Sequence record: NC_022096.1
DNA: 64,000 bases
Reading direction: 5' to 3' (one strand)
Made by a program: the position numbers and the translations under genes. The notes beneath the pieces were generated by a model that saw nothing but the letters and a program-made list of their open reading frames with translations, was not told the origin of the DNA and searched no databases. Shown piece by piece: positions 689-55,904 of the stretch (positions within the stretch are counted from its first letter, which is position 1; each line of letters begins with the position of its first letter).

Positions 689-1192
689 ATGCTTGGATTA
701 TTCGGCAACGTGACTGTGAAGAAAGGCAAGCGGAAACGCAAATTCAAGAAGTACCGCCAGTACGAATACGATTTCTACGGGCGCAAGCTGGTGCTGCAAG
801 GCTACGAAGCACAAGCGCTTGAGTACCTTGTCGAAGTCGGCGGGTTCGATCCTGCGGACATCAAGACCGAGTGCGAGTTCGGCGACGCCCTGAACATCCG
901 TTACAAGTATTCGGGCAAATGGCGTTCCTACATGCCTGACATTTTCATCCGCAACCACAACATCATCGTCGAAGTGAAGTCGAAATCCACGATGGGCTTG
1001 TTGAACAACAAGAAGCGTGGTTGGTCGATGAACCAAGCCAAGGCGAAGGCGTGCCATGCCCGCGGTTTCAAGTTCTGCGTGCTTCTGATGACCGACTCAG
1101 GCAAGCGCATTCCGCTGCCGAAGAACTGGCCGCTGATGAAGAAGGCGGAGTGCCTGCGCATCATGCGTGAGGAGCTTGGAGTTCGCATCTAA
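689..1192 (+). CDS. PD-(D/E)XK (TnsA-N-like) endonuclease
   Basis: YMPDIFI...IIVEVKS catalytic-type motif; AGGAG RBS before ATG 689 (ORF-track start 629 lies inside the terminator); paralogous to 13438..14262. Confidence 0.7.
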   Translation: MLGLFGNVTVKKGKRKRKFKKYRQYEYDFYGRKLVLQGYEAQALEYLVEVGGFDPADIKTECEFGDALNIRYKYSGKWRSYMPDIFIRNHNIIVEVKSKSTMGLLNNKKRGWSMNQAKAKACHARGFKFCVLLMTDSGKRIPLPKNWPLMKKAECLRIMREELGVRI

Positions 1193-1231: not shown

Positions 1232-1879
1232 ATGAGCATTACCTACAAGTACGGAAACGGCAAGTTGATCGGCTACCGTTCCGTAGACAAGTTTCATGGT
1301 GGCCTGTCGTTCAAGTTTCATCCAGACGGCGGAGACTCGTTCGATCGGTTCATCGACAAGGGTTTGATTCTCGAAATCAAAACTCAGTACGGTGAGCAAA
1401 CGATCGCGCTGAAACGGAACGACTACCGCGTAGTTCCCGAGCTGTGGAACTGCACCACGCTGATTTTCCAGAGTAACGAGTTGGCGCGCTCGCTCCACCT
1501 TGCTCTCGACGTTGAAGGCTTCCTGCACGTTTCGACACACAGCACGGCGACCCTTGCCGCTGAGTTGGCGAGCACCATCACGCACCAGCTGGCAACACCG
1601 TTCATGAAGCGCAAGCAGATTGACGTGCATCTGCGTAGTGAGCCCAGCGTCATCGCGCATTCCATTCTTCGGTGCATCGGGCTCAACCGATTCGCACCCG
1701 GCATGGACGTCAAGACGTTCTACCAACAGCATACGCCAGAAGCAGCCTACTCTGCGCTGTGTGCGTGGCTGAGCAACAAAGACCTTCGCGTGAACTTCCT
1801 GCCGCATGATGGCACGAAGCGCGCCGCATTCGTTTCTCGCATTGGCGAGAATGTTTTGGAGTTCGCCGAACAGGCGTAA
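1232..1879 (+). CDS. hypothetical protein
   Basis: 215-aa ORF with GGAC before ATG; first gene after the class A motif. Confidence 0.7.
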   Translation: MSITYKYGNGKLIGYRSVDKFHGGLSFKFHPDGGDSFDRFIDKGLILEIKTQYGEQTIALKRNDYRVVPELWNCTTLIFQSNELARSLHLALDVEGFLHVSTHSTATLAAELASTITHQLATPFMKRKQIDVHLRSEPSVIAHSILRCIGLNRFAPGMDVKTFYQQHTPEAAYSALCAWLSNKDLRVNFLPHDGTKRAAFVSRIGENVLEFAEQA

Positions 1880-1895
1880 GCAAATAGGACCCATC

Positions 1896-2693
1896 ATGGC
1901 AGCCGTACGTAAACTATCCGACCTGAAAGAAGCTGGCTACAACCCGCGCGTCATCAGCAGCAAGCGCCTCAGCAACCTGCACAAGTCCATGACGACCTAC
2001 GGCGACCTGAGCGGCGTCGTGTTCAACGTCAAGACCAAGACCCTGATTTCCGGCCACCAGCGCCTCAAGCCGCTGCGTGATGCTGGCATCAAAGTCGAAA
2101 TCAAGACCAAGCCCATCACCGACAAGTTCGGCACTGTAGCCGAAGGCTACGTCGTCGCCAAGACCAGCGCCGGCGAGCTGCGCATCCCGTACCGCGAAGT
2201 ATCCTGGAGCGACAAGAAAGCCGAGTACGCTGCCAACATCGCTGCAAACGCTCACGGCGGTGACTTCGACCGCACCAAGCTCGGTACCCTGCTGGCTGCT
2301 CTGGAGAAGGGCAAGTCGTTCGACATCGACGTTCTGGGTCTCGATCCGTTGAGCGTGCGCAGCCTGATGCCGAAGATGCCGAACGTCGAAGGTAGCGGTG
2401 ACGATGACGGTGAATCGTTCCAAGAGTACGGCGAGGACAGCTTCGAGTTCGATCATCAGTGCCCGAAGTGCAAGTTCCAGTTCAACTCCAGCTCTGCAAG
2501 CAAGCCCAAGAAGGACAAGCCGCAACCCAAGGCGCCGAAGCTCGACGTGAAGAAGGCCAAAGCCGAAGTCAAAGCCAAGAAGATCAAGGCTGAGAAGAAG
2601 ACCGACAGCAAGGCCAAGTCCAGCGCCGCAAAAGAATCGCTGAAAAAAGCGAAGTCCAGTAAGCTCAAGGCCAAGATCAAGAAGGCCAAGTAA
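1896..2693 (+). CDS. ParB/Srx-like domain protein with CxxC and Lys-rich C-terminal tail
   Basis: YNPR...ISGHQRL ParB-N motif; CPKC; last ~60 aa Lys/Ala rich; AGGA RBS before ATG 1896. Confidence 0.75.
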   Translation: MAAVRKLSDLKEAGYNPRVISSKRLSNLHKSMTTYGDLSGVVFNVKTKTLISGHQRLKPLRDAGIKVEIKTKPITDKFGTVAEGYVVAKTSAGELRIPYREVSWSDKKAEYAANIAANAHGGDFDRTKLGTLLAALEKGKSFDIDVLGLDPLSVRSLMPKMPNVEGSGDDDGESFQEYGEDSFEFDHQCPKCKFQFNSSSASKPKKDKPQPKAPKLDVKKAKAEVKAKKIKAEKKTDSKAKSSAAKESLKKAKSSKLKAKIKKAK

Positions 2694-2704
2694 GTAGGTC
2701 AGCC

Positions 2705-3712
2705 ATGGAAAAGAAAATCGTCAAGATACCTTCGATGAAGAAGATCAACGCTCTTCCGAAGGCATTCAAAGGCATCAGTTCGTTCTCCGGTTGTGGCGGG
2801 AGCTCCACTGGTGTGAAGATGGCTGGCGTCCAAGTGCTGCTCGCAACCGAGTTCATCAAGCCAGCCATCGAAACCTACGAGAAGAACCACAAAGGCACCA
2901 TCGTCATCGGTGAAGACATTCGCAAGGTCGACTGGGAGTCGTGGCGCAAGGAGCTCAAGCTCAAGCGCGGCCAGCTGGACTTCTCCGAAGGCAGTCCGCC
3001 GTGCAAGTCCTTCTCGACCTCTGGCACTGGCAGTGACGACTGGGGCAAGGAGAAACTCTACTCTGAGAACGTCTACCAGCGCACCGATGACCTCTTCTAC
3101 GAGGAAATGCGCAAGCTGGAAGCGTTCATGCCCAAGGTCTTCGTCTGCGAGAACGTCAAGGGCATGGTTGAGGGTGACGCCAAGGGTTACTTCATCGAAA
3201 TCCTGCGTGACCTTAAAGCAATCGGGTATAGCGTGAAGGCGCAGGTGTTGAACGCTGCCCGTCTCGACGTACCCCAAGCCCGCGAGCGCGTGATCTTCGT
3301 TGGTGTGCGTAACGACTTGGTGAAGAAAGGCTTTGAGCCTGTGTTCCCCAAAGCGAAGCCGTACGAGGTGAACGTCAACGACGTCCTACCTCACATTGCG
3401 TACCTCAAGTCGAAGTACCGAGGCGACATCAAGTACGTCCCAGCTTCGATCCCGAGTCCTACGATCGTGGCGAGCGATGGTACCAACAGTGAGACTGCCG
3501 GCTTCTCGTCTGGCGGCTTCATTGAGACTGTCGATGGCGAGCGCCGCAAGTACACCATCGACGAGTTGAAGAAGATTTTCACCTTCCCGGATGACTTCAT
3601 CTTCACTGGTACCTACAAGCAGCAGTTCGAGCGTCTCGGCCGCTCAGTTCCGCCACTCATGATGTATCGCGTAGTCGCGGAGCTTCGCCGCCAGATTCTG
3701 GAGAAGCTGTAA
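2705..3712 (+). CDS. DNA cytosine-C5 methyltransferase family protein, candidate carboxymethyltransferase
   Basis: Motifs I FSGCGG, IV GSPPCKSFS, VI ENVKG, VIII QARERV, X GRSVPP (Asn replaced by Arg313). Confidence 0.93.
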   Translation: MEKKIVKIPSMKKINALPKAFKGISSFSGCGGSSTGVKMAGVQVLLATEFIKPAIETYEKNHKGTIVIGEDIRKVDWESWRKELKLKRGQLDFSEGSPPCKSFSTSGTGSDDWGKEKLYSENVYQRTDDLFYEEMRKLEAFMPKVFVCENVKGMVEGDAKGYFIEILRDLKAIGYSVKAQVLNAARLDVPQARERVIFVGVRNDLVKKGFEPVFPKAKPYEVNVNDVLPHIAYLKSKYRGDIKYVPASIPSPTIVASDGTNSETAGFSSGGFIETVDGERRKYTIDELKKIFTFPDDFIFTGTYKQQFERLGRSVPPLMMYRVVAELRRQILEKL

Positions 3713-3717
3713 CCCAA

Positions 3718-3740
3718 GGGAGTCTTCGGACTCCCTTTTT
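3718..3740 (+). terminator. rho-independent terminator
   Basis: GGGAGTC-TTCG-GACTCCC-TTTTT. Confidence 0.9.
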
Positions 3741-3750
3741 ATGGCCTCCG

Positions 3751-3773
3751 AAACTGTAAATCCACAGTATAAT
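3751..3773 (+). promoter_or_regulatory. putative phage promoter, class A (AAACTGTAAA-N7-TATAAT)
   Basis: Directly after the terminator, 20 nt before the cmoA-like ATG. Confidence 0.6.
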
Positions 3774-3793
3774 CCATTGGTTGGAGCCTAAAC

Positions 3794-4570
3794 ATGAGCC
3801 AAGAACCTGTAGTAGACAACCACGTCCCAGGCGAACGCTGGGAGTTCAACGAGGACGTAGCCAAGCAGTTCGACCTGATGCTGGAGAAGTCGATCCCCGG
3901 CTACGGACAGATGCGTGATCTGGTGTATCGCATCGGCAAGCGTTTCGTTCAGTCGCCGTCGAACGTCATCGATCTGGGTGCTAGCCGTGGTGAAGCCGTG
4001 GCGCGCTTTATCGCTGAGTTCCCGCACTCTGACTTCTTCCTCTCGGAAGTTTCCGAGCCAATGCTGGCTGAAATGCACGAGCGCTTTGCTGATCTGCCGA
4101 ACGTGTTTCCTGTGAGCTACGATCTGCGCAAGACGTCCGAGCAGATTGCCACAGCGATTCGTAATCCGAAGTTCGGCATGGCCCACGCTGGGCTGAACCC
4201 TGTTGCGTCGCACACTACGCTGGTGCTGTCTATTCTCACCATGATCTTCGTGCCCATCAACTTCCGCCCGAGCATCTACAAGGGCGTGTACGACGGACTG
4301 GCCCGCGGCGGCGCGTTCATCGTTGTCGAGAAGGTGCTTGGCAACTCCGCCGCCATGCAAGAGCTGCTGGTTGACGTGTACCACGAGTACAAGCACGACA
4401 ACGGCTACAGCTGGGAAGCCATCGAGCGCAAACGCGCCGCCCTCGAAGGCGTGCAAGTACCTGTGAGCCATGAGACCAACATCGATATGTTGCGTGCCGC
4501 TGGCTTCCGCAACGTCGAATCGTTCTGGCGCAACATGAATTTCGTGGCCTATCTGGCTATCAAGGATTAA
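3794..4570 (+). CDS. cmoA: CmoA-like carboxy-S-adenosyl-L-methionine synthase
   Basis: WEFNEDVAKQFDLMLEKSIPGY, IDLGASRG, GGAFIVVEK, KRAALEG (Arg214) and AGFRNVESFWRNMNF all match recalled CmoA blocks; GGAG RBS. Confidence 0.85.
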   Translation: MSQEPVVDNHVPGERWEFNEDVAKQFDLMLEKSIPGYGQMRDLVYRIGKRFVQSPSNVIDLGASRGEAVARFIAEFPHSDFFLSEVSEPMLAEMHERFADLPNVFPVSYDLRKTSEQIATAIRNPKFGMAHAGLNPVASHTTLVLSILTMIFVPINFRPSIYKGVYDGLARGGAFIVVEKVLGNSAAMQELLVDVYHEYKHDNGYSWEAIERKRAALEGVQVPVSHETNIDMLRAAGFRNVESFWRNMNFVAYLAIKD

Positions 4571-4572
4571 CG

Positions 4573-5025
4573 ATGCGTGAACTCAAGCTACTCCGCAAGC
4601 GCGTAAAGCAGGCTTGGGCGGCAGAAGCTGACCTGAGTCCGAATGAGCGAGAACTGCACCAGTGGCAGTTCCTGTCGATGCAGAGCAACGTGCCCTATGT
4701 CGTCGGTAAGGGTGCCGCCAACACGTTCTTCTATCGTGTCGGTACTACTGGTGAAATGACCTACGTGATGCCAGACGAAATGTTTGCCATCATGGACAAG
4801 TGGGTCAACTCTAGCTTTGCTTTGTTCGCCATCACCAAGACGCGCGACATCAAAGACGCCCCGTGCTCCACGGACATCAACGTCCTGCTGCAAAAGACGA
4901 AGGACAAGTACGTCGGTTATTTCATTGTCGGTATCACACCCGACCAGCGTGTAGTTCGCCTGCATGTATTGAAAAGCGGACTCCGCAAAAACCAATGGGT
5001 GCCCTTCAAGCCGAAGAAACGGTAA
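4573..5025 (+). CDS. hypothetical protein in the modification cluster
   Basis: 150-aa ORF starting 2 nt after the cmoA-like stop. Confidence 0.7.
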   Translation: MRELKLLRKRVKQAWAAEADLSPNERELHQWQFLSMQSNVPYVVGKGAANTFFYRVGTTGEMTYVMPDEMFAIMDKWVNSSFALFAITKTRDIKDAPCSTDINVLLQKTKDKYVGYFIVGITPDQRVVRLHVLKSGLRKNQWVPFKPKKR

Positions 5026-5034
5026 GGAAAGACA

Positions 5035-5859
5035 ATGGACCAGAAGACTCGTTCCAAGAAATTGCGCCGAGCGCTCGTTGCGCAGGCGAAGTCGGTGGGC
5101 GTCAAGAATGTAGCCGTTCCCATGAGCAGCGGTGTGGACAGTCACTGTGCGCTGTTCGCCTGCCTCGAAGCTGGGTTGAGCCCGCACGTCTACTCGTTCC
5201 ATCTGGACGGCGTTGAAAGCCGTGACGTGCGTGTCGCCGAGAAGACAGCGGAAGCCTTCGATCTGCCGTTCACCAAAGTGACGCTACCCAATGGCAAGAA
5301 GCAACTCATCAAGGACGTCATCGAGCTTGCCCGTTTCGGCTGCCGTAGCAAGACGGACTTCGAGTGCTTCTGGCCAATGTGGCACTTGCTGCCGAAGATC
5401 AAGCAGAAGGCTTTCTTCACCGGCCATGGTGCCGACAGCCTGTACTGCCTTAGCCGCAAAGCTGTTCAACACTACGCCGGCCGCGAAGATGAATTTCGTA
5501 GGCTGGCTTTCTCGTCCAACAAAGCCTTCCAGAAGGGCTTGATCGAGAAGTGGTGTGAGACTAAGGGCAAAGGCAAAATCTACTGCCCGATCTTCTTCAA
5601 CCAGCAGACGCTTGCAATCTTCCAAGGCGCCAAGCCTGCTGATCTGAACAAGCCGATCCAGAAAGCCGTGAGCCGCATGGCGTTCGAGGAATACTTCGAG
5701 CATGTGCGCGTCTACGTTCACCAACCTTTCCAGTTGGGTGACACCGGCATCAAGATCGGCTTCGAGCAGCATCTGCTGGACAGCGAACTCAACACCAAGT
5801 CCTACAAAAGCGTTGTCGGCATTTATAATGAGCTGGTGCGCAACTACGGGAAGAAGTGA
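5035..5859 (+). CDS. stand-alone asparagine-synthetase-like (PP-loop) ATP-dependent amide ligase
   Basis: VAVPMSSGVDS PP-loop and FFTGHGADSLY matching the AsnB synthetase-domain TGxGADE motif; no N-terminal glutaminase domain; AGGA RBS. Confidence 0.75.
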   Translation: MDQKTRSKKLRRALVAQAKSVGVKNVAVPMSSGVDSHCALFACLEAGLSPHVYSFHLDGVESRDVRVAEKTAEAFDLPFTKVTLPNGKKQLIKDVIELARFGCRSKTDFECFWPMWHLLPKIKQKAFFTGHGADSLYCLSRKAVQHYAGREDEFRRLAFSSNKAFQKGLIEKWCETKGKGKIYCPIFFNQQTLAIFQGAKPADLNKPIQKAVSRMAFEEYFEHVRVYVHQPFQLGDTGIKIGFEQHLLDSELNTKSYKSVVGIYNELVRNYGKK

Positions 5860-6473
5860 CCATGTTCATCCAAAACTATATCCACTACAAGACCGATCCC
5901 GCCTCGTGGGTGCTGAACACGCTGTTCCCGCTGACTGCGGAAGAGTACGGCGACCAGCAAGCTTGGCTCGATGCTGGAGCTCCAGACGAACCTCCGATGA
6001 CTCGCGTCCTGAATGCTGAGCAAGATCGACTGTTCAAGCTGGTACACAAGCACGCCAGTGACTACTACGCGCAGAACAAGCCGTACCTGAACTCCGTCGC
6101 AATCATGATGGCAATGACCGCGCTCTACGGTGAGCAGCAAGTTCTCGGCCATTCGTATCGCGGTGCATTCCTGTTTGCCGGCAACTGCGAAGCGATGTTC
6201 AGTCGTCTGGTGATGCAAGGTCAAGGTGCAATGGATTTCATGCGCTACAACCTTGCACAAGAAGTAACTGGTGACCCGATGCTCGCGGTAATTCGCGCCG
6301 AGCAACTGTGCCACAAGTACGGCCTGCGTAATCACCGCATGCCAACCGGTGACGGTACCGACATCGTGTTCAGCCTTGAGCCGATCGCCAACCCGGTGTT
6401 CGATAACGTCAAATACATTCCATCCGTCGCTGGCTACTATACCATCGTCGGCAAAGGTGCAGCGAGGGATTAA
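5856..6473 (+). CDS. hypothetical protein
   Basis: 205-aa ORF, GTGA overlap with the upstream stop (alternative ATG 5862). Confidence 0.7.
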   Translation: MTMFIQNYIHYKTDPASWVLNTLFPLTAEEYGDQQAWLDAGAPDEPPMTRVLNAEQDRLFKLVHKHASDYYAQNKPYLNSVAIMMAMTALYGEQQVLGHSYRGAFLFAGNCEAMFSRLVMQGQGAMDFMRYNLAQEVTGDPMLAVIRAEQLCHKYGLRNHRMPTGDGTDIVFSLEPIANPVFDNVKYIPSVAGYYTIVGKGAARD

Positions 6474-6475
6474 CC

Positions 6476-7537
6476 GTGGCCAAGAAAGACAAACTCAAGA
6501 AGAAAAAAGGTGATGTCAAGATCGATGTCACCGTCGAGAAGAAAAAGAAAAAGAAGGCGAAAGCCGAGGTAATGCCGATCGCGAAGGACAGCTACATCAT
6601 CGTTCGTGTCGGTAGCAAGCACAAGCTGGCACTCGCCATCAACCCGGAACGCGGTCGCGCTGTCATCGACGAAACTCTGGCGGACGACGAGCCACAGCAC
6701 ATCGAGTTCGACGAGAACAACCTGGTGTGCAACCTGGGCACCAAGCCCAAGGGTGGCGCTGCCTTCGGCGTGCGTATCGAACCCTACGTCTCCAGCGTCG
6801 AATCCAAGTACGGCCAGATGCACTTCTTCCGCGAGCTGGGTGACCTGGAGAAGAAAGCACTCAAGCGCGCACTGCGTCGCACCTACGACGGCATGCTGGA
6901 ACAGAACCTGAACGTCTTCCCGTTCACCCAGATGAAGATTACGCCGAAGCGCGGCAAGTACGCGGGTATGTATCTGTTCCGTCGCAAGTCTGGCGAGGTC
7001 TGGGATGCCGTTGTACTGCACCCGGAGACGTTCGAGGACACCAAGTTCAACGAGTACCTGCTGTACCACGAATACGGTCACGCTGTCTGGTACAAGATGA
7101 TCACTGCCAGCTACAAGGCCAAGTGGATCAAGCTCTACCACAAGCGCCTGGAGCTGATGAACATCCTGAAAGATCGTCTTGAGCCGATGCTGGACGAACT
7201 GCTCAAGTTCGCCGGCAGTCTCAAGGACTTCTACAAGGAACTCGAAGAGGAAGACCGCCTCGTGTTCCGTGAGGTGCTGTCGCACTACAAGCGCTACCAC
7301 AAGATGGATGGCTACTCGATGGACATCCTGCACATGGAAGACACTGAGAAGTTTGCTTCGATGTGGCCGAAGCGTGCAACTCTCGTTGAATCGCGCCCTG
7401 ACCTGAGCGAATATGCGATGGTCAAGCCTGAGGAGTTCTGGGCAGAAGCGTTTGCGTTCCACATGACTGGGCGCAAAATGCCCAAGGACATTACCAAAGC
7501 CATGGAGAAAACGCTGACTGCTTTGCAGAGCGTGTAG
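6476..7537 (+). CDS. putative zinc metallopeptidase (HExxH) with basic N-terminus
   Basis: YHEYGHAVW and downstream YAMVKPEEFWAEAF; N-terminal poly-Lys stretch. Confidence 0.6.
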   Translation: MAKKDKLKKKKGDVKIDVTVEKKKKKKAKAEVMPIAKDSYIIVRVGSKHKLALAINPERGRAVIDETLADDEPQHIEFDENNLVCNLGTKPKGGAAFGVRIEPYVSSVESKYGQMHFFRELGDLEKKALKRALRRTYDGMLEQNLNVFPFTQMKITPKRGKYAGMYLFRRKSGEVWDAVVLHPETFEDTKFNEYLLYHEYGHAVWYKMITASYKAKWIKLYHKRLELMNILKDRLEPMLDELLKFAGSLKDFYKELEEEDRLVFREVLSHYKRYHKMDGYSMDILHMEDTEKFASMWPKRATLVESRPDLSEYAMVKPEEFWAEAFAFHMTGRKMPKDITKAMEKTLTALQSV

Positions 7538-54629: not shown

Positions 54630-55904
54630 ATGAAACTTGCAGTCTACGCCATTGCGAAGAACGAAGCCAAACACGTCGAGCGCTGGTACGAGTCGGTAAA
54701 AGACGCCGACGAAATCATCGTGCTGGACACCGGCTCCACCGATGGAACCCAGAAGCTACTGAGCGATCTGGGCGTGCGTGTTGCCTCGATGGCTTTTGAA
54801 CCTTTCCGATTCGACACCGCCCGAAACGCGGCACTGAATCTGGTGAGCCTCGACGCCGACTACTGCATGTTCATCGACTTGGATGAGACCATGCCCAAGG
54901 GTAGCATCGCTGCCATTCGCAAGGCCATCAACAAGACTCAGAAGGACATGTACGCCCTGCGCCTGGTCTTCAAGTTTGACCACAAACGCCAGCCGATCGT
55001 GTCGTACCCGCGCGAAGCCGTACACCGCCGCAACGCTTTCTACTGGAAGTACCCTGTACACGAACTGCTCGCCTGCCATCAGGGCGAATACTCGTATGAG
55101 GAGCTCAACGTCCAGGTGTTCCACGAGCCGGATGAAACGAAAGAGCGCTCCTCGTATCTGAGCCTGCTGGAAACAGCCGTCGAAGAAAACCCGAACGATC
55201 CGCGTCAGGCGCAGTATCTGGGCCGTGAGTACATGTACCAAGGCCGCCCGTTCGATGCTCAGATGTGGCTCAAGCGCCACATTCAAATGGAACCACACGG
55301 TCCGTTCCGTTCAGAGTCTGCGTCGTACATTGCCCAGTGTTTCCTGATGCTCGAAGGGCAAGTCGAAGAGGCTATCGACGAAGCTGAGGCTTGGTACTTC
55401 CGAGCCATCGCCGAGTTCAATAGTGCCCGTGAACCGTTCTGTGAACTGGCGGACCTTTACTTCAAGTGCCATGAGTTCGAGAGTGCCATCGGCATGTTGA
55501 AGTCGGCCATGCGTATTCCAGCGAAGCCGAATGTCGCCATGATCAGCCGAGACGAGTTCTACTCGCACTGGCCGCATCACATGCTCGCTGCCTGCTACTT
55601 CAACATCGGCAATCGCACGGCAGCAAAATACCACATCCAAGAAGCGATGAAGTCTGCTGGCACTCTCAGCGGTCACCTCGCAAACGACATCGTGAAAATT
55701 CTGGGGCTCGAAAATGCTACTCAGTCTCTCCTTGGCGTCGAAGCCAGCTCGGGTGTCGAAGGACACGTTCCTGAAGATGGGCCCGAGCAAACAGAAGCAG
55801 TATCTGACCCACTACCCTCGGAGCAGCCATCGCTTTCTTCTCGCCAAGAAAGCCAAAGCTCCGAAACCGGAAGTGCAGCCGCGTCGTCGCCTGTCTCGGA
55901 ATGA
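54630..55904 (+). CDS. glycosyltransferase family 2 with TPR-like C-terminal repeats
   Basis: AIAKNE, VLDTGSTDGT, ARNAAL, FIDLDE (DxD), PVHE; helical YLGREY/AWY.RAI repeats. Confidence 0.85.
   Translation: MKLAVYAIAKNEAKHVERWYESVKDADEIIVLDTGSTDGTQKLLSDLGVRVASMAFEPFRFDTARNAALNLVSLDADYCMFIDLDETMPKGSIAAIRKAINKTQKDMYALRLVFKFDHKRQPIVSYPREAVHRRNAFYWKYPVHELLACHQGEYSYEELNVQVFHEPDETKERSSYLSLLETAVEENPNDPRQAQYLGREYMYQGRPFDAQMWLKRHIQMEPHGPFRSESASYIAQCFLMLEGQVEEAIDEAEAWYFRAIAEFNSAREPFCELADLYFKCHEFESAIGMLKSAMRIPAKPNVAMISRDEFYSHWPHHMLAACYFNIGNRTAAKYHIQEAMKSAGTLSGHLANDIVKILGLENATQSLLGVEASSGVEGHVPEDGPEQTEAVSDPLPSEQPSLSSRQESQSSETGSAAASSPVSE

Follow-up and report, generated by a model that had tools for sequence, protein, structure and literature searches.

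A predicted CmoX-type DNA hypermodification module in the Pseudomonas jumbo phage PaBG

The stretch of DNA analysed here (the window, 64,000 nucleotides) corresponds to positions 124001-188000 of record NC_022096, a window position being the record position minus 124000, and belongs, by 100% identity over window bases 1800-6500, to PaBG, a Pseudomonas jumbo myovirus of the genus Baikalvirus (NC_022096 / KF147891, 258,139 bp, host P. aeruginosa PAO1). The analysis was centred on gp309, a cytosine C5-methyltransferase (C5-MTase) homologue with an unusual residue in motif X, and on its neighbours, which are labelled in the record as ParB-like partition protein (gp310), DNA cytosine methylase (gp309), tRNA methyltransferase (gp308), hypothetical protein (gp307), asparagine synthase (gp306), hypothetical protein (gp305) and peptidase (gp304); the asparagine synthase is filed under metabolism in the PaBG genome paper (PMC7412058). 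As judged by homology, PaBG carries at this locus the entire published CmoX module, consisting of a ParB-like protein, CmoX, CmoA and CmoY. The features of the locus are as follows.

1896-2693, plus strand: ParB-like protein, gp310, 265 residues (PHROG 620 match; alternative open reading frame (ORF) start at 1806)
2705-3712, plus strand: cmoX homologue, predicted DNA cytosine C5-carboxymethyltransferase, gp309, 335 residues (PF00145 and PDB 8YF3 matches)
2993-3004, plus strand: motif IV, S97-P98-P99-C100 with the predicted catalytic Cys nucleophile (codons AGT CCG CCG TGC)
3638-3649, plus strand: motif X, G312-R313-S314-V315 (codons GGC CGC TCA GTT)
3716-3741, plus strand: terminator-like hairpin, AAGGGAGUC-UUCG-GACUCCCUU with a U5 run (RNA folding)
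3750-3761, plus strand: conserved block GAAACTGTAAAT, candidate phage promoter element (contig comparison)
3794-4570, plus strand: cmoA homologue, predicted carboxy-SAM synthase, gp308, 258 residues, with the R214 codon at 4433-4435 (TIGR00740)
4573-5025, plus strand: p150, gp307, conserved small protein between cmoA and cmoY (phrog_23597, unknown function)
5035-5859, plus strand: cmoY-like, predicted ATP-dependent amide ligase, gp306, 274 residues, with the PP-loop at 5125-5142 (PF00733, SpCmoY homology)
5862-6473, plus strand: p203, gp305, lineage-specific ORF 3' of cmoY (PaBG-like contigs only)

The ParB-like gene stops 12 bp upstream of cmoX, cmoA starts 82 bp 3' of cmoX on the same strand, so that the cmoA-like gene does adjoin the methyltransferase (MTase) as the first-pass annotation of this DNA had stated, and cmoA, p150, cmoY and p203 are spaced by 2-9 bp. 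Each gene of the module was found to be single-copy in a whole-genome check, with no paralogs.

The first-pass annotation had singled out an Arg in place of the motif X Asn of gp309 as a signature of carboxy-S-adenosylmethionine (Cx-SAM) use. Direct reading of 3638-3649 gave the codons GGC CGC TCA GTT in frame with the 335-residue ORF 2705-3712(+) and, as (3638-2705)/3 = 311, they encode Gly312-Arg313-Ser314-Val315, which bears out the sequence and numbering that had been claimed. The protein was identified as a C5-MTase using PF00145 (E 1e-51) and TIGR00675 (153 bits, cut-off 100.65); motifs I (FxGxGG), IV, VI (ENV) and VIII (QxRxR) are all present, and the family alignments show no variation at F27, G29, G31, G32, E149-N150-V151, Q191, R193 and R195. 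In HMMER alignments with proteins of solved structure, 'ferlgRsvpp' of gp309 stands opposite 'ykmigNavpv' of HaeIII and 'hrqigNavpp' of DNMT1, and R313 is therefore placed at the motif X Asn position. The canonical Gly-Asn of M.HhaI-type C5-MTases, which are dependent on S-adenosylmethionine (SAM), is absent from gp309, where Arg313 stands in place of the Asn.

The closest characterised protein is SpCmoX of Synechococcus phage S-B43 (PDB 8YF3; Yang et al., Nat Commun, 7 Dec 2025, PMC12783734). In that phage CmoA converts SAM and prephenate to Cx-SAM, SpCmoX transfers the carboxymethyl group of Cx-SAM onto cytosine C5 at GpC sites to give 5-carboxymethylcytosine (5cxmC), and the asparagine-synthetase-like CmoY uses glycine, 5cxmC and ATP to form 5gcxmC, the species present in virion DNA (PMC12783734). 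The 1.9 Å structure of SpCmoX shows Arg350 in place of HhaI Asn304, touching the carboxymethyl group of Cx-SAM; wild-type SpCmoX used Cx-SAM only, without any use of SAM, and the R350N mutant was inactive with both (PMC12783734). R313 of gp309 is the counterpart of SpCmoX R350, HhaI N304 and M.MpeI N374. The link between a natural basic residue and Cx-SAM use is thus borne out by a solved structure, in which R350 binds the carboxylate, and the engineered M.MpeI N374K precedent invoked in the first pass holds: the CmoX authors cite it in the same sense, writing that R350 'strikingly mirrors' it (PMC12783734). The expectation that an R313N mutant would switch preference to SAM is, on the other hand, contradicted by the homologue, since SpCmoX R350N took neither cofactor.

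In sequence as well as in fold, gp309 resembles 8YF3 more closely than it does any structurally solved SAM-dependent MTase. The top PDB sequence match is 8YF3 (E 5.4e-56; motif X GRMVPP), with HaeIII at 3.4e-22, and the pairwise alignment with SpCmoX runs end to end at 35% identity (E 3e-66), with C100 for C98 and R313 for R350. An AlphaFold2 model of gp309 (predicted local distance difference test score (pLDDT) 90.7, predicted template modelling score (pTM) 0.91) has 8YF3 as its closest fold (E 2.5e-29, template modelling (TM) score 0.77), followed by M.HhaI (E 2.9e-22, TM ~0.72) and M.MpeI (4DKJ, TM 0.67), so that the comparison with M.HhaI and M.MpeI proposed in the first pass was carried out at the level of the fold. 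Every cofactor or catalytic residue that the CmoX paper names is kept, including SPPC 97-100, which lies opposite SpCmoX S95-C98 and is invariant in 120/120 homologues, E149 and R193/R195; the adenine and ribose contacts F27, E49, F50 and D71, for SpCmoX F25, E47, F48 and D69, are conserved in 118-120 of the 120. The SPPC motif and the motif X Arg, which together defined the 5,615 CmoX candidates of the authors' census, are both found in gp309. On the contigs of those candidates 4,257 CmoA, 2,251 ligase and 1,660 ParBc proteins were counted, the function of the ParBc proteins being given as unknown (PMC12783734).

The Arg of gp309 thus marks the PaBG enzyme as a CmoX family member with predicted Cx-SAM-dependent activity. 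The CmoX system had, however, already been discovered and published in December 2025, and PaBG provides an additional family member, not a novel signature. PaBG, Pseudomonas and jumbo phages are not named in the text or the searched supplements of the CmoX paper (PMC12783734), and a literature search found no further CmoX publication; as UniProtKB and IMG/VR, both searched by the CmoX authors, contain PaBG, its protein is probably an unnamed node of the published census.

The two downstream enzymes were assessed in the same manner. The PaBG CmoA homologue matches the TIGR00740 equivalog over its full length (14-239 of 239; E 7.6e-38, 130.5 bits), H. influenzae YecO (1IM8; E 4.5e-26), E. coli CmoA (4GEK; E 2.2e-25) and SpCmoA (29% identity, E 1e-31). 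In E. coli CmoA, Arg199 is salt-bridged to the carboxylate of the cofactor and distinguishes CmoA from ordinary SAM enzymes (Byrne et al. 2013, PMC3663124). HMMER alignments to 4GEK and 1IM8 equate it with R214 of PaBG CmoA, and Y37, D60, G62, S64, E85 and E179 correspond to Y39, D62, G64, S66, D89 and E164 of the E. coli enzyme, E85 being an Asp-to-Glu replacement; an insertion leaves the equivalents of D117 and N132 ambiguous or unconserved. PaBG CmoY matches PF00733 (E 4.9e-6, 26.9 bits, cut-off 21), covers only AsnB model positions 234-368 of 517, contains the PP-loop S31-S-G-V-D-S36 and has no glutaminase domain; its identity to SpCmoY is 33% across 251 residues (E 2e-35). PDB sequence searches with CmoY and with the ParB-like protein returned nothing useful.

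The association between the motif X residue and cmoA was examined in a census of 161 related loci from two collections, viral contigs and bacterial plus archaeal assemblies. Viral loci were fetched with their flanks and scored for the motif X residue and for homologues of the PaBG and S-B43 neighbours, the presence of cmoA being counted within the fetched flank only. In the combined set cmoA was found beside 131/144 enzymes of the Arg type and 0/17 of the Asn type. Among the 84 non-redundant viral loci it was found at 68/74 Arg-type and 0/10 Asn-type loci (Fisher p 2.9e-9), always on the same strand at Arg-type loci, with a median gap of 36 bp and a gap of at most 100 bp in 49/68; in the bacterial and archaeal assemblies the corresponding figures were 63/70 and 0/7 (p 1.4e-6), with one Met-type locus lacking cmoA. 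At least 2.8 kb 3' of the MTase is available at 8/10 viral Asn-type loci, and a missing flank is therefore no explanation for the absence of cmoA. A CmoY-like ligase adjoins 19/74 viral Arg-type loci and 0/10 Asn-type loci.

Of 204 aligned family members, 191 have R in the motif X column, 12 have N, one has M and none has K. Among the 120 nearest database homologues (43-100% identity) the column holds 117 R, two N and one M, all other catalytic positions being invariant. The co-occurrence with cmoA that the first pass had proposed for GR or GK motifs therefore stands for GR; a natural Lys (GK) was found in none of the 204 members. Met (GMSV) was seen in two members, P0084 (an ENA contig) and L157, with no cmoA nearby.

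As the loci are related, a tree was built with the motif X residue masked. The best tree requires seven changes for the Asn state; well-supported branches force at least three of them, and the presence of cmoA goes with the Arg state in every independent pair. There are at least three concordant independent Arg/Asn switches and none that is discordant; the independent-pairs sign test on the three well-supported pairs, all concordant, gives p 0.25, significance being unreachable with three, and the Fisher values therefore overstate independence. Every Asn-type relative keeps motifs I, IV, VI and VIII, and for that reason these relatives look like working 5-methylcytosine (5mC) enzymes. The nearest of them, P0064 (L014), has a ParB-like protein (48%), the MTase and a p150 homologue in the PaBG order and lacks cmoA and cmoY. 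Such same-clade Asn-type relatives, consistently without cmoA and ligase, are a control not described in the text of the CmoX paper. The 6-7 Arg-type loci without nearby cmoA in each set are compatible with the use of host Cx-SAM, which has been demonstrated in E. coli (PMC12783734).

The bacterial-assembly collection (80 loci) was also inspected for truly cellular, non-phage Arg-type enzymes, a possibility that was dropped: two loci from multi-copy Verrucomicrobia metagenome-assembled genomes (MAGs) were annotated and both carry phage genes, the rest having been scored for Arg/Asn state and for cmoA, ligase and ParB homologues. No restriction-modification-like use of an Arg-type enzyme was seen among the 80, two of them annotated. 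Three Verrucomicrobia MAGs (loci L119, L121, L123 and L126; L140-L142 and L145; L127, L138, L147 and L155) each contain at least four diverged ParB - cmoX - (ligase) - cmoA copies with 76-92% nucleotide identity over many kb. L140 encodes a DNA polymerase, primase/helicase, exonuclease, terminase, portal and major head protein, which points to several related prophages per Verrucomicrobia genome and to the carriage of the module by temperate phages as well.

Several residues other than Arg313 co-vary with the Arg state in the family alignment. Their codons in PaBG are as follows.

2921-2923, plus strand: R73 (family alignment)
3059-3064, plus strand: Y119-S120 (family alignment)
3629-3631, plus strand: E309 (family alignment)

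Arg-type sequences have Ser120 in 99% of cases and Asn-type sequences in 17%; the corresponding figures are 100% and 42% for Glu309, four residues N-terminal of Arg313, 99% and 50% for Tyr119, and 98% and 50% for Arg73. The natural Asn-type relative P0082 nevertheless retains Y119, S120 and E309. Ser120 and Tyr119 lie within a conserved W113...Y119-S120 segment after motif IV. These four residues are offered as a lead, as candidate second-shell determinants of Cx-SAM use, and the second shell may be the reason why SpCmoX R350N was inactive rather than switched.

Taken together, gp310-gp306 of PaBG very probably constitute a CmoX-type DNA hypermodification module acting after replication. Homology, active-site conservation and gene linkage are seen in PaBG itself, and the chemistry would follow by analogy with the S-B43 homologues for which it was demonstrated; we infer the operation of the pathway in PaBG, its recognition sequence and the identity of its amine. 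CmoA (3794-4570) would convert SAM and prephenate to Cx-SAM; CmoX (2705-3712), in the manner of any C5-MTase, would flip the target cytosine, Cys100 attacking C6, and move the cofactor group to C5. The Arg313 guanidinium would pair with the cofactor carboxylate, making carboxymethyl the transferred group and 5cxmC the product. CmoY (5035-5859) would then adenylate the 5cxmC carboxylate and join an amine to it, for which glycine, yielding 5gcxmC, is the sole demonstrated precedent, and the resulting bulky charged adduct would shield the phage DNA from host nucleases.

Several points weigh against this interpretation or limit its reach. Identity to the characterised S-B43 proteins is only 29-35%, and tests of DNA modification or restriction resistance are not reported in the PaBG papers, including the genome paper (PMC7412058). 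The score of PaBG CmoA lies below the curated TIGR00740 cut-off of 193.3 bits; biochemically active SpCmoA, used as a yardstick, scores lower still, at 115.6 bits, and the cut-off is therefore too strict, or uninformative, for phage CmoAs. The terminator-like hairpin splits cmoX from cmoA-cmoY, and co-transcription may be lacking. The target-recognition span is 30 residues shorter than in SpCmoX, so that GpC cannot be assumed for PaBG, and close relatives of PaBG carry a different ligase paralog, so that the adduct may vary.

These last two points bear on the strongest of the alternatives considered, in which the pathway runs to 5cxmC and the final base is something other than the glycine amide, because CmoY uses another amine (ammonia, a polyamine or an amino acid other than glycine), because CmoX recognises a site other than GpC, or on both counts; we regard this as a substantial possibility, if not the favoured one. 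The span from R195 to R281 (motif VIII to motif IX) is 86 residues in PaBG, against a family median of 87 and 116 in SpCmoX, and GpC specificity has been shown for SpCmoX only, the specificities of other members being called undetermined by the authors (PMC12783734). If the motif were GpC, its targets would be 5,517 sites in the window, or 31% of all cytosines. For the amine, PaBG CmoY is only 33% identical to SpCmoY, and the published ligases fall into several clusters with distinct pocket residues, for which other amines were predicted (PMC12783734). Two PaBG-like contigs (L005:5565-7360 and L013; IMG/VR 3300042268_000114 and 3300001592_000019) pair a CmoX 87% identical to that of PaBG with a different PP-loop paralog, 288 residues long, 35% identical to PaBG CmoY and overlapping the cmoX stop, and encode between this ligase and cmoA a 223-residue 2-oxoglutarate-Fe(II) (2OG-Fe(II)) oxygenase (PF13640, E 1.6e-14), which suggests a different, possibly oxidised adduct in these close relatives. 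Against another amine, glycine is the only substrate shown experimentally, and the largest ligase cluster together with several smaller ones keeps the residues for an alpha-amino-acid carboxylate (PMC12783734); the lack of a glutaminase domain in the PaBG ligase argues against glutamine-derived ammonia in particular.

A broader proposal can be made only tentatively: PaBG-type jumbo phages may make an undescribed 5cxmC-derived base with another amine, another motif or both, their siblings adding the swapped ligase and the 2OG-Fe(II) oxygenase, and the family may hold repeated natural cofactor switches from Arg to Asn that depend on changes in the second shell (S120, E309). If so, the second-shell need would explain the dead single R350N mutant and provide a recipe for interconverting methyl- and carboxymethyl-transferases. 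Oxygenases are not mentioned in the CmoX paper (PMC12783734).

It is improbable that 5cxmC is the end product in PaBG and that the asparagine-synthetase-like protein acts on a non-DNA substrate. The figure of 19/74 Arg-type loci with a recognisable ligase in the flank indicates that the ligase is optional in the family, and p150 intervenes between cmoA and cmoY in PaBG; ligase homologues are nevertheless absent from all ten Asn-type loci, PaBG cmoY lies on the same strand within ~470 bp of cmoA, and in S-B43 virion DNA 5cxmdC is completely converted to the amide (PMC12783734). The tRNA-Thr(UGU) and tRNA-Ala(UGC) isoacceptors carry uridine 5-oxyacetic acid at position 34 (cmo5U34) in enterobacteria such as E. 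coli and Salmonella, and PaBG encodes both tRNAs in a cluster just 5' of the window (record 120228-122843; L001:229-2844). Hence the last alternative, that gp309 is an ordinary SAM-dependent 5mC MTase with an incidental Arg, cmoA serving tRNA cmo5U34 and the asparagine synthase metabolism, can draw on those two tRNA genes ~4-6 kb upstream of the module and on the annotation of the genes in this sense in the record and the genome paper (PMC7412058), but is very hard to sustain when wild-type SpCmoX makes no use of SAM (PMC12783734), the Arg found in 191/204 members stays with cmoA across repeated switches, many small contigs and prophages have cmoA next to an Arg-type MTase, and no CmoB-like gene or other further methyltransferase is annotated anywhere in the PaBG genome. 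A dual role, in which phage Cx-SAM serves both DNA and, through host CmoB, tRNA, could be envisaged, and would leave the Arg/cmoA linkage unexplained.

The PaBG module was compared with the known systems. Like S-B43, it encodes the three enzymes on a single strand, each homologous over its full length (35%, 29% and 33% identity for CmoX, CmoA and CmoY, respectively), and it shares the SPPC motif, the motif X Arg and the adenine/ribose contacts; its ParB-like neighbour recalls the ParBc proteins reported on many CmoX contigs. It differs in gene order (ParB-cmoX / cmoA-p150-cmoY in PaBG, cmoA-cmoY-cmoX in S-B43), in the hairpin between cmoX and cmoA and in its shorter target-recognition span. 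Unlike SpCmoA, PaBG CmoA has an insertion of ~17 residues between beta3 and beta4, and it keeps a 'KR..LE.V' motif of the E. coli R199 type where SpCmoA does not align. The hosts also differ, PaBG being a jumbo myovirus of Pseudomonas and S-B43 a marine cyanophage.

M.HhaI and M.HaeIII have the same fold as gp309 (TM ~0.72) and share its catalytic motifs I, IV, VI and VIII; a covalent Cys-C6 mechanism is expected by analogy. They differ in their motif X Asn (HhaI N304) and SAM cofactor, and members of the CmoX family have in common a W113...Y119-S120 segment and E309 that co-vary with the Arg. In M.MpeI N374K a basic residue likewise replaces the motif X Asn and allows the use of Cx-SAM; that residue is an engineered Lys, the target is CpG and no dedicated CmoA or ligase is known for it, whereas PaBG has a natural Arg. 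CmoB, a Cx-SAM-dependent tRNA 5-hydroxyuridine-34 (ho5U34) carboxymethyltransferase, is likewise a consumer of CmoA-made Cx-SAM, and recognition of the cofactor carboxylate by an Arg has been proposed for it. As a class I RNA methyltransferase acting on a tRNA oxygen, it is unrelated to C5-MTases.

The chemistry and the role of the Arg were established beforehand, and the finding is accordingly not a discovery. It serves to correct three misleading PaBG annotations ('DNA cytosine methylase', 'tRNA methyltransferase' and 'asparagine synthase'), and PaBG with P. aeruginosa PAO1 would be a genetically tractable host-phage pair in which to set 5cxmC-type hypermodification against restriction and defence systems, an effect left open by the S-B43 work (PMC12783734). 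Further value lies in the natural Arg/Asn switches and in the ligase and oxygenase variation among relatives.

The remaining elements of the locus were characterised as follows. gp310 matches PHROG 620, 'ParB-like partition protein' (E 2.9e-38), and phrog_498, a ParB domain fused to MTases (E 2.2e-20), and gave no Pfam match at E<=0.01, PF02195 included; the same-position homologue in prophage L121 matches PF02195 at E 1.9e-5 and 25.0 bits, just below the cut-off of 26.3. Its N-terminal ParB-like region is followed, in the C-terminal part (window 2400-2693), by a CxxC (CPKCKF) zinc-ribbon-like element and a Lys/Ala/Ser-rich tail. This tail comprises ~70 residues, KKAKAEVKAKKIKAEKK..., and resembles histone-H1-like non-specific DNA-binding tails. 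ParB-like homologues lie directly 5' of both Arg-type and Asn-type MTases (L004, L014, L017, L121 and L140), and in Erwinia phage pEa_SNUABM_5 the ParB-like/MTase pair is kept although cmoA-cmoY are 17 kb away; the ParB-like gene therefore tracks the MTase, and cmoA and cmoY track the Arg.

The hairpin at 3716-3741 starts 4 nucleotides after the cmoX stop and was revealed by direct folding (folding free energy -20.9 kcal/mol, z -3.78, 0/200 shuffles as stable), a consensus terminator scan having missed it. PaBG-like contigs retain it and show a compensatory change of T-A to C-G, and the PaBG genes likely form two units, [ParB-like, cmoX] and [cmoA, p150, cmoY, p203]. The GAAACTGTAAAT block at 3750-3761 is invariant in PaBG, L006 and L012, and seven 12-mers resembling it (<=2 mismatches) occur in the window against 2.8 expected; it is a possible PaBG promoter element. 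Related 12-mers were noted at 1190, 9558, 13258, 21409(-), 31561 and 52894.

A homologue search with p150 returned only 10 database relatives. Its AlphaFold2 model (pLDDT 90.4) has an alpha/beta fold with no significant PDB match (best E 0.18), and a BFVD search returned only p150 itself. Its candidacy as a component of the Cx-SAM pathway was dropped: p150 homologues are also found 3' of Asn-type MTases without cmoA (L014, L017), and p150 is therefore not tied to Cx-SAM chemistry. One JGI homologue carries the label 'antitoxin YwqK'. For p203 no Pfam, NCBIfam or PHROG match was obtained, and its relatives (31-42% identity) were found in PaBG-like contigs only; it was rejected as a conserved fourth component, being unrelated to the post-ligase ORFs of Erwinia and Yersinia phages and of S-B43, and its membership of the module is doubtful.

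Some further observations concern relatives of the module and other genes of the window. The CmoX of Erwinia phage pEa_SNUABM_5 (gp046, L004:21053-23158) is 701 residues long owing to an inserted intein with Hint_2, PT-HINT and Intein_splicing domains, which lies exactly between GSPP and the catalytic Cys (...GSPP/CFLRD...VVHN/CKGFS..., slashes marking the intein boundaries), an arrangement that would make the catalytic nucleophile residue +1 of the C-extein. Split CmoX matches were also seen in Yoloswag, AD1 and other Erwinia/Dickeya jumbo phages. Upstream of the PaBG module, gp312 (window 689-1192) encodes a TnsA/Vsr-like endonuclease-fold protein (DUF7487, E 4.9e-14; Tn7_TnsA-like_N, E 3.7e-5) that is kept just 5' of the module in PaBG-like contigs with 74-76% identity. 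Towards the other end of the window, gp263 (54630-55904) is annotated as a beta-1,4-glycosyltransferase.

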